A stretch of 63,862 nucleotides of DNA, the filler included, from Reticulomyxa filosa (lineage: Eukaryota; Protista; Foraminifera), in assembly GCA_000512085.1 (NCBI GenBank). It is 25 parts of 25 records of this genome, joined end to end, with 100 filler letters (N's around TTAATTAATTAA, not from the genome) between each part and the next. Parts side by side here need not be neighbours in the genome. Positions count along the whole stretch, not along the records: positions 21,858 to 25,990 come from ASPP01009491.1; 24 more parts are not named here. The stretch is one strand, 5' to 3'. A program made the translations under genes and the position numbers. The notes under the pieces are model-generated. The model made no database searches, was not told the DNA's origin, and saw only the letters and a list, made by a program, of their open reading frames with translations. Below are positions 2,902 to 26,654 of the stretch, piece after piece. Position 1 is the first letter of the stretch. Every line of letters begins with the position of its first letter.

Positions 2902-3698
2902 TAAGCCGATACTAATTCTTTACTGCTTTGTTGCTTATTGTTTTTGTTCATATTTTTTTGATGTCAATTGGTTCAAGTAAAGATCATGGACTATCGAATG
3001 TGTATGTTTTTGGAGACAGTTCATTTTACTTCATATTCCAAAAGAAAACAAATCCAACGATTAAAATTTAAAATTAAATATTAAAAAACAATTTTGATTT
3101 GTGATTATTATTGCATCAGGTAACGTTTTAAAAAAATATGAACGAGAACTGATACATAAAACATTCTCTCAAATTTTTTTGTAGTATTAGACTGCATTGC
3201 ACAATCATTTCTTTAAAAAAATTTGGATTAAGCGTTCATTATAGACTTACGATTGAGTACACTCAATATAACAAGCACCGATTTTTTATTCATCTGCCCA
3301 CATCATCATTGTCACTGCTATTAAGAAAATATGCTAAATTGATTGGAAGTCCACGTATTGTACGTTTTCAAATTTCATTTCAAACGCGTTTATCATTGTT
3401 CGCACAAATGCAATAACGGATTTATTCGTGTAAGTAAGTTTTTTTAACTCTCAAAGTATCAAAACTTTTTACTACTTCAGCAAATTGTGTCGCTAATTTG
3501 AAAACATAGAGTCAATTTGGTCTAATTTGATCAGCAAAGAAACGTGACCAATTAGTTCTTTTATTCAATTATGTGCAATTTTTTTATCATTAACCAAATA
3601 AAAAATATCAATGTAATACTTTTTTATTTCTTAAAAAATGGTCACATCCCCTTTTTTAGAAAAAGCAAACTTAAAAAAACTTCAGCAACATTAACAAT

Positions 3699-3849
3699 AT
3701 GAGTAATCGAACTACAACACAAAAATCTTTTGAAAGAGAAACTGAACAAGCCAAACAAAGTCAACAGCTTATTACTAACTTTCAAACTTTGAAGGCGCTG
3801 CCCATTATACTAAGAGATTCTCAATGTGTGCTACACAAACACGAACTCC
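3699..3849 (+). CDS. Kelch-type beta-propeller gene, 5' end (paralogue of the gene at 32721)
   Basis: FQTLKALPIILRDSQCVLHKHEL matches FQSLKALPTPLYLSQCVLHKHEL in the full paralogue. Truncated by the contig end. Confidence 0.8.
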
Positions 3850-4832
3850 NNNNNNNNNNNNNNNNNNNNNNNNNNNNNNNNNNNNNNNNNNNNTTAATTA
3901 ATTAANNNNNNNNNNNNNNNNNNNNNNNNNNNNNNNNNNNNNNNNNNNNTTACTTGTCCTAAAATTATCAAAGCGAGTGCCAATATCCATTTCCACCACT
4001 GGATTGCATATAATGTACTCAAAATGATATACTTGCTCCCCAAGAAATAATAATACCAGATGCTCACAGTAATAAACTGTACTACTTTAAGCATTGAAGC
4101 CACGTTGCAATAATCGTCAACGATGACAGCGACATGATTATGTAATTTGAACAAGCAGAAAATAAATAGAATATGACTACATTATAAAAGAGAAAGATTG
4201 TGGAAGGAACAAAAGGAGTGTTAATTTCAAGTTCCAAAGGTGACTTGACGAATGTAAACATAGCACAACTAGTCAATGAACACTTGCAAGAAGATCTAGC
4301 GAAAAGGGGGTACAACGTAGTACGAGCAGCATTCACTGGCTCAGAAGAATATATCACACTTTGAAAGTCAATTCTAAATACTATCGAAAGTTGCGATAAA
4401 TGTTGTCTGCCGATGCTCAAGACAGTTTTCTAAAATCTGTCAAAAAAAATCAATGAAAAGTTTATTTACGTTAAGAAAATGACAATATGTATGTATTTTG
4501 CTGATTTTAGTTTACTTTACAACATATTTTAGGAATTTATTTAGAATCAAGATGCTATTTGAAGATTTGGATCCTGCTTTTGAATAAAAACCTAAAACAG
4601 TTTGTCTAATTTGTCTTGTCTGTTTATTTCAGTATCGAAAATTTGTAATTGAAACTACCTTTATTTTTTGCAATAAAACAACAAGCAACACCGAAATTAC
4701 TTGGTTTGAACGGTGGAACAACTCGGTTTGAAGCGAAAGAGCCAATAAAAATTAACTGAAAGCTGCCTTTTGCTGCTGAGCAAGATTGAACTCTTGAGGA
4801 TGTTGTCAACAGCAACTATTGTTTGAAAGAAA

Positions 4833-21857: not shown

Positions 21858-22531
21858 TTGACTTGCAACAAACACTATTAATTTTTTTAAACATTAAATA
21901 AATGAACTGTACAAACAAGAATCCACTCCACTTCACCTCAAATCCCACTCTGTTTTGTTTTTATATACGTAAACCTGTACAGCAGAGTTCATATAACAAG
22001 TGTTTCCAAGATTTTTTAAACCAACAAGGCCCTGATGTTTGCTTATCCACTTAATGTCACAGAAATTGTTGGAATCGTTATTTTTCGAGTCTTCTTCGTC
22101 TTCTTCGTCATCTTCTTCGTCATCTTCCTCTTCTTCTTTCTCTTCCTCTTCTTTGTTGCTCTCTTTTCTGTTTTTTGCCATCGATGTCGATGACTGATCT
22201 TCGTCTGTTTGTGGTGGATTACATTTTTTAATTTTTTCAAGTGCTTCGACAATCTTCATTGCTGAGAGTTTTCCCAATTTGTACTCATCTTGAAGTTTTG
22301 ATACTGTGAAGTCTGCCAGCATTTGTCCTGTTAATTCTTTTCCTTTCATTTCTATAACCTGTCTCATTCCCTTTTTGCCAATTTCAATCAAACTTGCAGT
22401 CCAATCTAAGCAATAACAAAACCAAATTCATTCTTTAAACAAGGCAATACTTTGTTTCTGATTTAACTTGTGATGTCCGAGTTAGTCCATTTCTCCAAGG
22501 ATTTTGTTGCGTATTCGTCTTCTACTTGCAT
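21858..22531 (-). CDS. SAM-like domain plus ubiquitin-specific protease (USP), 3'-truncated
   Basis: ATG at 22531 and intron 22467-22406. SAM-like EKWTNSDITNW...ELTGQMLADFTVSKLQDEYKLGKLSAMKIVEAL, an acidic linker, then the USP Cys-box GLVGLKNLGNTCYMNSAVQ. Confidence 0.85.
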
Positions 22532-22926
22532 TCTTTCGAGAAAGACAAACGAGAAACGAAAAAGAGTAAGTTTAAGAAAAGGTATTCTTTGGTAGAACAA
22601 AATAGCTTCACTTTACAAATTTGAAAACCAAAATCAAAGAAGAAAACGATTTCGATATTGTAAAGAAAAAGGAATCAAAATAAGATATAAAACTTTTTTC
22701 AGAAAAAGATCGTCCACTCCGTCTTTTACTTTGAATAAACACAATAAATTGGAGATATGCATCTTTTTAAAAATTAAAAAAAATCATGGCAATAATAGTT
22801 AATCATTAGTATTAGCAACAATGGAAAGATTAAAAAAAAATATAAATCAATAAGAGGAGAACGGAAAACTCCTTTTTTGCTACCTATTCAGTCTTTTCTG
22901 AATTGAGAAAGAAATACCTGTCAAAC
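22532..22926. promoter_or_regulatory. Putative 395-bp bidirectional promoter
   Basis: AT-rich interval between two divergent ATGs. Function is inferred from position only. Confidence 0.5.
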
Positions 22927-25184
22927 ATGCAAAGCGAAATAAAAATAACAATACCTTCCAAAAATTGGGGAGCAAATGTATTAGCAGGTAACAAAAAACA
23001 GCGTTTTTATTTCCTAAGTAAATCAAACATACAAAATAAACACTTTGAATATATAATTTTATAATTCATTCTAAAAGCTTGGATTAAATTACATGCATGG
23101 AATGAACAAGAAGTGAAGAAGCTTGTAACGTTTGTGGAAGCAAACAGCATAAAGGGCTGTGAATTATTAGAAATGTCAAGTGGAGACATTGAAAAAGATT
23201 TGGAGTGCACCAAAGGCATTGCCGAAGAACTTCATCGCTTGATCAATATTTATAACAAAAATGTGGAGAATTGGACTCCGTTAGAATTGTCATCAGTGGT
23301 TGAATTTCTAAATATAGTAGTTGATGCTGATCTTCGAAAGAGTGTGGCAACGTATATCGTTCGTAACGGTGTGATTGCAAGTGAGTTTAAAAAATGGAGT
23401 GGAGACGATTTAAAAAAAAAAATGGGTATTGAAAAAGGCGTACTTTGGCTTGTTCGTTTATCAAAGTACATTGCTGCTTTGAGTACGAACAAGACAAGTA
23501 CAAACGACAAAGAAAGAGATGCAAGAAGTGAAAACGAAAGTGAAAGAGAAAAACAAAGAGAAAAAGACAGAAAGAAAGAGGAAGATAAAAAACGGAGCCA
23601 AAAAGGATGAAAACATTTGCTGAGAAAGCTGCAAGGAACGTGTTTGACGATGCCAAGGAGACATTATCGTCATTTTTTCCAATCATACGTACACCAAAAG
23701 GTGACGGAGTCTTGTTGAGAAGCTCAGTTACTCCAGACACCACGGTGAAGGAATTACGACTGCTCATTAGCGAGCAGTTGATACAAGACGGAAAAAAGCT
23801 CCAACTTCTATTCAACAGCCAGGCTCTGGTAGACGACAAAACTTTGGCATTTTACCACATTGTCAATAGTCAATGTATCATTTCGACAGCAAGTAAAGCA
23901 GCAGGAGGATCCAAAATGACTGGTTAATCTACAACAATGATTTCCTATTCCAAATTTTTTTATTTTTTTTTTTTTTTGCTCTTGCTTTTAGTTTTAACAG
24001 TTTTTTTGTTGTTGTTCTCTGCCATTTGTGGATTAAAAACAGAAGGCAGAGTCTTAAACTTAAAAAATCCATTGATTCATGTTACCGACAAACCTGATTG
24101 TATTACATATGATAGTGATGCAGACTATCCACGTGCAGTTAATCCAACAAAGAAGACAACCTCTTTTTATTATATTCGATGTTTATGTATACATAAACAT
24201 CCTCAAACAAACGTTTTAGGCAATGCCTTGTGGTCACGCGATTACAGCGCAAACAATGTTTGACTGGCTCAAGAGTAAGTGATATGAATGGGATAATGTT
24301 TAAAAAAAAAAATGGAGTGGGAAATAAAAGAGTAGAAATTAATAAATAAAAACTATAAAAAAAAAAAATTGAAAAATAGCCCTGTTTGAAAAAAATGAAA
24401 AACTCACGGATATTTATTGTCCATTGCCAGAGTGCAATCAAGTGTGGGATTGGACTTTGGTAGCAACTGTTGCTAATTTGACAGCAGAAGAAAACTTACG
24501 GTATACGTTAGAAAGAGACAGAAGGAAGAATGGTAACGAAAACATGAAAAAATGCCCAAAGTGTTCGATCAATATCGTAAGACCAGAAGACTTGACTATG
24601 TTTCGGTAATATCATGTTTTTATATACATATACACTTTTTTTTTTTTGGATATAAAATATACAACAAACAAACAGCATCAGATGCACCGCTTGCACTGGA
24701 GGCGATTTTTGTTTCATGTGCTGCAAACCCTGGCTTAAAAATGGATTCCAAATTTGTGGCAATCCTGATTGTAGTGGAGAGCATATTAATAATTCTTTAC
24801 AAAAAATGTGGCACCAAAAAAGCCAATGGGCTGGTCTGAGGATAGAAAAGACGCTGTCATCCCAATTTTACGAGCCTGTCCTAAGTGCTTGACAGTTACT
24901 TGTTTCTTATTATATCCTTGTATTCGTAACTCAAAATTTTTATTTTTTTATATTCCTATGCTTTTTTAGCTCATCGAACACGAAGAGAGGTGCAAGCACA
25001 TGAAATGTCCAAATTGCAGTAATGAATTTTGTTTTGCTTGTTTGGGTATCAAAACTCCTTCAGGTTTGTGCTAACCTTTTTTTTTCCCTCCTCTTTTTAA
25101 CTTTTTTTATTTTATTTTACAGGATGGCCCTGCAACACCTACACGACAGTGTGCCCAATTGCCGCCAGGCAAACATTGACATAA
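22927..25184 (+). CDS. SAM-SAM-ubiquitin-like-RBR E3 ubiquitin ligase (multi-exon; two frameshifts at A6 runs)
   Basis: Two SAM-like units, a UBL (TTVKELR...QLLFNSQALVDDKTLAFYHI), RING1 (C...MPCGH...CPLPEC), IBR (CPKC...CTAC...FCFMCCKPW) and RING2 (RACPKCLTLIEHEERCKHMKCPNCSNEFCFACL). Frameshifts near 23590 and 24803. Confidence 0.85.
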
Positions 25185-26654
25185 AAATTTCAACAGTACT
25201 TTTTCTTCACAACTTGTTGGACTGTTTACAAACCTACTAAAAAAAGTGTCTTCAAATTTTTTCGTGATCTATATTTTATGCCAAAAATAAGGTATGCTTG
25301 AATATCAGAATAAGCTACCTAAAAAAAAGTAGAAGTTGCAATAAATGCTAAGTTTAACAGCAAAATCAGATTACTGTTTTCTTATCACTGATATTTCATA
25401 GCTATCTCCCAAAGTATTCATCATTGCACATATTTCGTTACTAATGTGTTTTTTTGTGGACATGCGCTCTCTATCAAAACACAATATTTATAGAGCATTT
25501 ATTTTTATAATAAATGTTATCAATACTAAGACCCTCTGAATATGGAGGGGAACCAATGTGTTCAATTGCCCAGATTTGTGATTTGTGTTTTCAAGTCAGT
25601 TACCCGCGTTATTTAAAATTTCTCAATCTTGCACTACTGCACCTCAATCTCGCGTGGGACGTCTGCGGCTGATAAGAGACTGCACTAAATGTAATACGAA
25701 AAGGTTTACTCAAAAAGAGACCAGTTTTCGGCAAAACAAAAGTAAATTAAATAAATAAAAGGTTAATGACACAATAAAAGAAAGAAAACAAACAAGAGTA
25801 AAGAAAGTTGGTGGAGAAGTTTAACCCACTGGAGGCTCCTCAAATCCTTCAGAGTTCAGTCATATGTAGTAGGAACTTGCCCTGCACTAGTAATTACGGA
25901 GCAGCAGGTTGTGTTTTCGTAAATGATTGTAAGAATGAAGTGAAGTTTGTAATTTGTGATTATCATTTACAAAAACATAACCTGATTCTTNNNNNNNNNN
26001 NNNNNNNNNNNNNNNNNNNNNNNNNNNNNNNNNNTTAATTAATTAANNNNNNNNNNNNNNNNNNNNNNNNNNNNNNNNNNNNNNNNNNNNAATTTCACTG
26101 GCTTAGTTTTGTTTTAAGATTTTTTCAAAACGATTTTCGTTTCAAAAAAAAGAGGAGGAAAACACCATTTGTTAAATTGAGCAGACAACAAAGATTATGT
26201 ATTGCTCTAGATAATTAAAAAATAAATAAGGAATGACGTGCAATCAAAAGTTGACAAAGAATAACACTGGATGTGAAAGATACAAAAAATGTTTTGATCT
26301 TCCCAAATGCATCCTGTACGATCTTATATGTGTCTTCTAAAAAATCTGATGATTACTTTCTTGTCATGATATTTTATTGCTTCTTCATAAAAATATTAAA
26401 TCTTTTCATCTTAAAAAAAAACAATATTATCACTTTCATGCCACTTTTTTAACATATTCTAAAGTCTTTTTCTTTTTTAAAAAACGCTGGAGTGAGAAAG
26501 AAACATTAATTTTCATTTGAACATCAAAAGGATTCATTTCAAGACCGAAATAGTGTCTTAAAACAACTAGTTTGTTCGCTGAAGATACAACAATTCATGT
26601 GTCGATATTCACAAGACAATAAAGAAAGTTAATCATTGGCCACAAATATAAATC

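Follow-up and report, generated by a model that had tools for sequence, protein, structure and literature searches.

Within a stretch of 63,862 nucleotides (nt) of DNA from Reticulomyxa filosa, composed of 25 joined parts of assembly GCA_000512085.1 and hereafter called the window, two genes of the ubiquitin system were found head to head at positions 21858-25990, a segment identical to contig ASPP01009491.1 over its full 4133 nt. On the minus strand, a USP-type deubiquitinase (USP) begins with the start codon at 22531, and on the plus strand a ubiquitin ligase of the RBR type (RING1-IBR-RING2) begins at 22927. The two genes are divergent with 395 nt between them, and the reading of ATGs 395 bp apart in the initial annotation was confirmed. 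We consider the chance slightly better than even that this locus holds a copy of a bidirectional, lineage-specific USP/RBR gene pair with a shared drive, self-association through SAM domains and editing by the USP. Both genes would be co-expressed from the shared intergenic region of ~400 bp, the ligase would self-associate through its tandem SAM domains, and the USP may trim or reverse the ubiquitin chains built by the ligase, either on the ligase itself or on shared substrates. These three steps are drawn from what is known of SAM domains, RBR ligases and couples of E3 ligase and deubiquitinase such as HOIP with CYLD and OTULIN. SAM domains oligomerise, USPs and RBR ligases have opposing activities in one pathway, and E3 ligases and deubiquitinases often form antagonistic couples; to our knowledge, such coupling is almost never reflected in gene order in eukaryotes.

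The pairing recurs in two further copies of the locus in R. filosa, referred to as L002 (ASPP01009490.1) and L003 (ASPP01038989.1, with the ligase RFI_36258); an environmental contig of the Joint Genome Institute (JGI), which encodes the homologous protein P0003, is referred to as L001. All sequence, profile and fold searches were performed exon by exon or with natural homologues. L002 is 94% identical to the window copy over 2.6 kb of DNA, has the same head-to-head layout and is a recent duplicate or haplotype. In L003, the SAM-UBL-RBR paralogue RFI_36258 is 31% identical to the ligase of the window and also has a divergent USP upstream, and a check for unlinked paralogues therefore found this ligase linked as well. 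In the L003 USP, the intron position behind the Cys box is shared, the sequence likewise continues with C-L-L-Q-V-(K/R)-P-L, and the start motif is similar; the N-terminal domain is 23% identical to that of the window USP. Since L003 retains both the divergent USP and the intron position, the pair is old: the two genes were duplicated together, and their head-to-head layout has persisted through divergence of the ligase to ~31% identity. The intergenic DNA differs between the window and L002 by 2.5% substitutions, compared to 8.6% at synonymous sites (Fisher p = 3e-4) and 6.2% in introns (p = 0.008). This is modest evidence that the region may act as a constrained shared promoter. Of the co-regulated pair proposed in the initial annotation, it is the paired unit that gained support, by the divergent USP in both L002 and the 31%-identical L003 and by the constraint on the intergenic DNA.

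The Cys box reported earlier for the minus-strand gene was verified. It lies at the end of exon 2, reads G-L-K-N-L-G-N-T-C-Y-M-N-S-A-V-Q and fits the pattern N-x-G-N-T-C-Y-x-N-S-x-x-Q, with the predicted catalytic Cys codon at 21996-21998. The Pfam profile UCH matches the window USP at profile positions 1-17 with an E-value of 3.6e-4, which is under the gathering score because the remainder of the gene is cut off by the contig end. The collinear sister contig L002 holds 352 further codons of the USP core, which match UCH positions 46-147 with an E-value of 2e-10. After intron 2, the exon reads C-L-L-Q-V in all three copies, and the start motif M..(D/E)DEY of exon 1 recurs in L002 and L003. Scans of metagenomes for relatives of this USP found none. 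In the acidic linker, L002 has 18 + 3 extra in-frame nt relative to window positions 22102-22108; the Asp/Glu-rich tract thus varies in length and the frame is kept. The annotated USP model of L003 (890-1284, minus strand) opens with a hydrophobic frame which has no counterpart in the window, and the homologous start is probably near L003 position 795.

The RBR gene was modeled with eight exons, from the ATG at 22927 to the TAA stop codon at 25182-25184. In its product, SAM1 and SAM2 come first, followed by a charged linker and a UBL with a terminal GG; the RING1-like finger, the IBR and a RING2 bearing the Cys-x-His motif complete the order. The exon model was tested against P0003, a protein of 585 amino acids (AA) encoded without introns on L001. 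The translated exons of the window tile P0003 residues 5-585 in order, and nucleotide matches to the P0003 contig end exactly at the predicted exon junctions. Exon 5 is identical to P0003 residues 388-461 at 51 of 74 positions, and the first part of exon 2 is 42% identical to P0003 residues 16-148.

As to the RBR module, the initial annotation had assumed a complete RING1-IBR-RING2. This holds for the IBR and for the RING2 with a Cys at the catalytic position, but RING1 has one zinc site only. The closest solved relative by sequence is ARIH1 (E-value 5e-7 over RING1-IBR-RING2), and the window motif C-K-H-M (24991-25002) is aligned to the catalytic C-N-H-M of ARIH1 (G-G-C-N-H-M-V-C). Pfam matches to exon 7 were IBR (E-value 1.9e-5) and IBR_1 (8.9e-6); the IBR profile gave an E-value of 0.0028 on exon 5 alone and of 4.7e-10 on P0003, where IBR and RING2 were matched together. 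The ligands of IBR and RING2 are invariant across the family, with the last His of the IBR replaced by Cys. RING1 retains only P-C-G-H and C-P-x-x-x-C, i.e. zinc site II, in the 10-13 family members compared; in these, Thr takes the place of Cys at C5 and C6, C1 and C2 are either missing or unconserved, and the finger lacks the eight ligands of a C3HC4 RING. The reduction is common to the whole family and is thus a family trait rather than decay of the window copy. The RBR ligase belongs to an undescribed subfamily.

The UBL noted earlier in the ligase was recovered with the Pfam ubiquitin profile above its cut-off (E-value 6.5e-6; 26.3 bits, cut-off 25.4), and a profile of the UBL family matches ubiquitin itself, GG included. 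In every family member which has a UBL, the domain ends in GG, in alignment with the RLRGG of ubiquitin. This end is R-L-x-G-G in several members and K-A-A-G-G in the window copy. The family-wide GG would be expected if the locus were a precursor cassette in which cleavage by the USP behind this GG sets free both the RBR ligase and a SAM-tagged ubiquitin-like protein, and USPs do process linear ubiquitin fusions. We consider such a cassette very improbable: the SAM-bearing branch has drifted from L-R-G-G before the GG, no E1 or E2 is linked to the locus, UBL-RBR members occur elsewhere without a USP neighbour, and the GG may persist simply as a hinge. Equally doubtful is a self-contained cassette of a SAM-tagged, polymerisable ubiquitin-like protein with its own ligase and its own de-conjugating enzyme, which would amount to a private foraminiferal system.

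SAM-like domains had been proposed for the N-termini of both proteins; of these, the ligase domains are supported by the structural model of a homologue, whereas the fold was not shown for the USP. An exhaustive HMMER search with the N-terminal 133 AA of the ligase against 1.84 billion representative proteins returned only the window product, RFI_13116 (93%) and P0003 (43%). The Pfam SAM profiles gave no match on the ligase N-termini of the window and its relatives even at an E-value of 10, and a sequence search of the PDB with the SAM-like pieces gave chance matches only. The AlphaFold2 (AF2) model of P0003 residues 1-160, for which the window sequence was part of the alignment, has a pLDDT (predicted local distance difference test) of 76.5 and forms two five-helix bundles. 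In a Foldseek search with this model, all of the 50 best matches were SAM structures, the tandem SAM of SARM1 being first (probability 0.99). Using VIA-align, each half was superimposed on complete SAM domains with Z-scores of 7-9.4 and a root-mean-square deviation of 2.0-2.8 Å over 65-73 residues. Two tandem SAM folds at the N-terminus of the ligase are thus supported by the predicted structure. Pfam misses N-termini which fold as SAM in the model and is therefore uninformative for SAM here.

The N-terminal helical domain of the USP comprises ~80 AA and has a SAM-like pattern (W-x-x-x-D-I-x-x-W ... G-x-x-L ... L ... G ... I-x-x-x-L-x-x-I). In the ESM Atlas, a SAM cluster ranked first among the named matches (0.89), which the tool rates as a lead only; with the N-terminus of the L003 USP, the same search gave no usable match. 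The AF2 model of the part encoded in exon 2 alone was poor (pLDDT 62), and Foldseek returned no SAM with it, the matches being meaningless. Pfam gave no match either, with the limit just stated for the ligase, and hhalign and HMM (hidden Markov model) scoring of the USP N-terminus against the SAMs of the ligase did not rise above the null level, i.e. no similarity was detected. The USP N-terminus is accordingly described as SAM-like in its sequence pattern. These results bear on the more far-reaching proposal that heterotypic SAM-SAM contacts join the USP and the ligase in a polymeric writer/eraser complex whose layout would recall that of paired immune genes. The tandem SAM of the ligase, with those of SARM1 and liprin as the best Foldseek matches of the whole model, the SAM-like pattern and Atlas lead of the USP, and the pairing conserved in L002 and L003 would all suit such a complex. 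We consider it quite unlikely in view of the poor USP model, the blank Atlas search for L003, the missing Pfam SAM match of the USP (although the ligase SAMs were missed as well) and the lack of profile similarity between the two N-termini; an immune role is without evidence.

The reading frame of the window ligase is interrupted by two breaks of 1 nt, near 23603 and within 24801-24820. The first lies in an A-rich tract (~23598-23606), where frame 1 stops at TGA 23608-23610; at window position 23603, L002 carries an additional base, and its frame stays open there. The second is found around two A6 runs, where nucleotide alignment to L001 gives a net shift of +2 between 24794 and 24817. The ligase frame of L003 is broken at an A7 run near L003 position 2740. 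Among the four breaks of the three copies, two (the second of the window and that of L003) are in pure A-runs and a third (the first of the window) is in the A-rich tract; in each of these three cases, a single base is missing from the copy compared to the frame of its intact relative. Between the window and L002, dN/dS was 0.32 for the ligase (0.06 for exons 3-5) and 0.42 for the USP, with dS ~0.09. Ten indel events were counted in 954 non-coding nt compared to four in 1742 coding nt, two of the latter being in frame. Because of the deficits in A-runs, the low dN/dS and the few coding indels, we lean towards assembly error: miscalled A-rich tracts in the draft assembly are a more likely cause of the two breaks of the window copy than real lesions.

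Several observations weigh against a functional gene pair. At the first break, the window reads AAAAA and L002 AAAGAAA, a difference which exceeds simple run length. L002 has a 1-nt deletion of its own in the ligase at a non-homopolymer site, so that all three ligase copies of R. filosa are frame-broken, which also fits decaying duplicates, and the RING2 motif of RFI_36258 is C-K-F instead of C-K-H (L003 ~3250-3342). The USP ends before the His box on every contig, L002 included. The intergenic DNA of the window and L003 shares no similarity, and a motif search in the two regions scored below shuffled controls. Finally, the homologues P0012 and P0013 from other organisms, which are on long contigs, have no USP neighbour.

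On these grounds, the window copy, and perhaps all three, may be a recently inactivated pseudogene, the breaks being real and no ligase being made from the locus; we regard this as possible, though unlikely. In addition to the four breaks and the His-to-Phe change in the catalytic motif of L003, the substitution density of the exons (4-5%), which is similar to that of the introns, would agree with decay, as would the repeats, which make up ~30% of the R. filosa genome (PMC13746701), and the three copies, which show that the locus was duplicated. Conversely, dN/dS is between 0.06 and 0.4, frame-disrupting indels are strongly depleted in the coding DNA, and the single-base deficits in A-runs resemble homopolymer miscalls of a draft assembly (N50 3.6 kb, PMC13746701). 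The USP part is unimpaired in the two close copies, and related ligases are intact in environmental contigs.

A further explanation is that the adjacency is merely historical, i.e. that a segment with two unrelated genes of the ubiquitin system was duplicated without any functional coupling. We judge this to be unlikely. The spacing of 395 nt was rejected as a special feature, being ordinary for a genome with a median intergenic distance of 426 bp (PMC13746701). Since the spacing is the genome norm, closeness alone carries no weight and it is the recurrence of the pair which matters. A chance neighbourhood would be in line with this ordinary spacing, with linkage seen only within R. filosa, the one foraminiferal genome covered, and with the lack of a shared motif in the paralogous intergenic regions. 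It accounts less well for a layout and orientation kept at ~31% identity of the ligase and ~23% of the USP N-terminus, and for intergenic DNA more constrained than synonymous sites between the close copies. Moreover, the two enzymes oppose each other in one pathway. The bidirectional gene pair remains our preferred reading, at the strength given at the outset.

The features of the contig are compiled in Table 1.

Table 1. Features of the USP/RBR locus in R. filosa (window coordinates).
Feature	Position	Strand	Remarks
USP exon 3, first 17 nt	21858..21874	-	C-L-L-Q-V; gene cut by contig end
USP intron 2	21875..21974	-	100 nt; position after Cys box same as in L002 and L003
USP exon 2	21975..22405	-	helical SAM-like domain ~22215-22405; acidic linker 22086-22151; Cys box 21975-22031
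USP intron 1	22406..22467	-	GT..AG, 62 nt; frame continuous only when spliced out; conserved in L002
USP exon 1	22468..22531	-	ATG 22531; 21 codons + 1 base; starts N-terminal helical domain (W-T-N-S-D-I-T)
Shared intergenic region	22532..22926	.	395 nt; presumed bidirectional promoter
RBR exon 1	22927..22987	+	begins SAM1; aligned to P0003 residues 5-14
RBR exon 2, first part	23078..23480	+	remaining SAM1 to ~23250, SAM2 23251-23480; P0003 residues 16-148
Charged linker, K/E-rich (exon 2)	23481..23606	+	holds frame break 1
RBR exon 2, remainder	23607..23922	+	frame 0; UBL; GG at 23904-23909
RBR exon 3	24043..24137	+	N-terminal half of RING1-like finger (D-C-I-T-Y-D); P0003 residues 339-368
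RBR exon 4	24220..24274	+	P-C-G-H 24226-24237 (RING1 C3, H4); Thr for Cys at C5 and C6
RBR exon 5	24380..24605	+	C-P-L-P-E-C 24418-24435 (RING1 C7, C8); helical linker; IBR start C-P-K-C 24553-24564
RBR exon 6	24676..24894	+	IBR remainder (frame 2); frame break 2; RING2 start C-P-K-C 24877-24888 (frame 1)
RBR exon 7	24970..25063	+	RING2 core; catalytic C-K-H-M 24991-25002
RBR exon 8	25123..25184	+	last RING2 ligands (W-P-C ... V-C-P), stop; P0003 residues 567-585

The contig is AT-rich (~34% GC), and its introns are short GT-AG introns of 62-120 nt. The short introns fit the published figures for the R. filosa genome, which has a mean intron length of 87 bp (PMC13746701). The protein annotated on ASPP01009491.1 is RFI_13118, a 'hypothetical protein'. 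The public models are wrong: RFI_13118 (22473-23610, plus strand) begins antisense within USP exon 1, crosses the intergenic region and ends at frame break 1, and a second model of 157 AA (23937-24609, plus strand) consists of RBR exon fragments with the introns read through. A search of Rfam with 21858-25990 gave no match, i.e. no non-coding RNA. In the 806 nt 3' of the ligase stop codon (25185-25990), no gene was called and just short open reading frames were seen. On L003, a third gene of 288 AA with no Pfam match on record lies downstream of the ligase (3451-4517, plus strand).

The profile search yielded 18 clusters of proteins with UBL, one-zinc RING1, IBR and RING2, most of which are UBL-RBR proteins alone with ~320-340 AA. 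SAM-bearing members were confined to R. filosa and AT-rich environmental contigs. The cluster of P0003 and P0021 is made up of intronless contigs of ~2 kb from at least four JGI samples, and the two longest, L001 and L009, share their 5' end 66 nt upstream of the ATG. Since they are intronless and have an identical 5' end, these contigs are read as transcripts, according to which a relative makes an intact SAM-SAM-UBL-RBR protein. The environmental homologue occurs in forms of 585 AA (P0003) and 614 AA (P0021) on L001 and L009-L011. More K-E-Q-L repeats are present between the SAMs and the UBL in P0021 than in P0003, which probably explains the length difference and suggests a variable coiled-coil spacer. 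Other domain combinations were seen in P0015 (Logan/ENA), with a Macro domain N-terminal to the one-zinc-RING1 RBR core, and in P0020 (Logan/ENA), in which a protein kinase lies C-terminal to a UBL and the RING1-IBR part of the core. A 137-Mb contig of the hawksbill turtle Eretmochelys imbricata encodes P0019, annotated as 'unnamed protein product', which has 38% identity to the IBR-RING2 part and could be a true animal member or contamination. The long ENA contigs L005-L007, from two eukaryotic assemblies, encode intronless UBL-RBR homologues with no adjoining USP; instead, fragments with a match to E3_UbLigase_R4 (UBR4-like) are found 1.5-6 kb upstream of the homologues.

A limited literature search brought up no description of the gene pair, of this RBR branch or of a SAM-USP or SAM-RBR protein. 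What is new is the architecture, together with the single zinc site of RING1 and the conserved pairing of the genes; each of the building blocks is known. A ligase and a USP which stay head to head through deep divergence of paralogues offer a compact natural case for studying the co-regulation of E3 ligases and deubiquitinases, and the undescribed RBR branch raises the questions of how a one-zinc RING1 recruits an E2 and whether cleavage of the UBL takes place. Limits to the value of the locus are set by the little-studied organism, the fragmentary assembly and the frame breaks of the window copy.

Compared to known RBR ligases, the ligand patterns of IBR and RING2 match those of ARIH1 (HHARI), and the catalytic Cys-x-His is aligned. 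In contrast to ARIH1, RING1 of the window ligase is without C1, C2, C5 and C6, which leaves one zinc site, the IBR closes with C..C where ARIH1 has H..C, and the protein carries a tandem SAM at its N-terminus and a UBL but no Ariadne or UBA-like domain. A UBL before the RBR module is shared with Parkin and HOIL-1L, in both of which the UBL regulates activity. Unlike these, the window ligase has no RING0 or NZF and instead carries SAMs, a one-zinc RING1 and the family-wide GG of the UBL; beyond RING2, no significant sequence match was obtained (Parkin E-value 0.0057).

The predicted tandem SAM of the ligase resembles those of SARM1, the top Foldseek match, and liprin, but the two SAMs are oriented differently to each other (TM-score ~0.33 for the tandem) and the window has no Pfam SAM match. 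Among the SAM-bearing RING ligases BFAR and LRSAM1, the SAM of BFAR scores a Z of 9.2 against the AF2 model of P0003. The effector of the window ligase is an RBR module rather than a TIR or a simple RING.

In its layout, the locus is similar to the NLR pairs of plants (RPS4/RRS1, RGA4/RGA5), which are also divergent, have a short shared promoter and were duplicated and retained as a unit, but the protein families are unrelated and nothing points to an immune role of the R. filosa pair. The link in the R. filosa pair is genomic, in contrast to LUBAC; the genes of HOIP, CYLD and OTULIN are unlinked, and their products bind via PUB-PIM contacts and SPATA2, not via SAM domains. LUBAC (HOIP) with CYLD and OTULIN is the best functional analogy for the pair, combining an RBR ligase with a USP-type deubiquitinase which limits or edits its chains.

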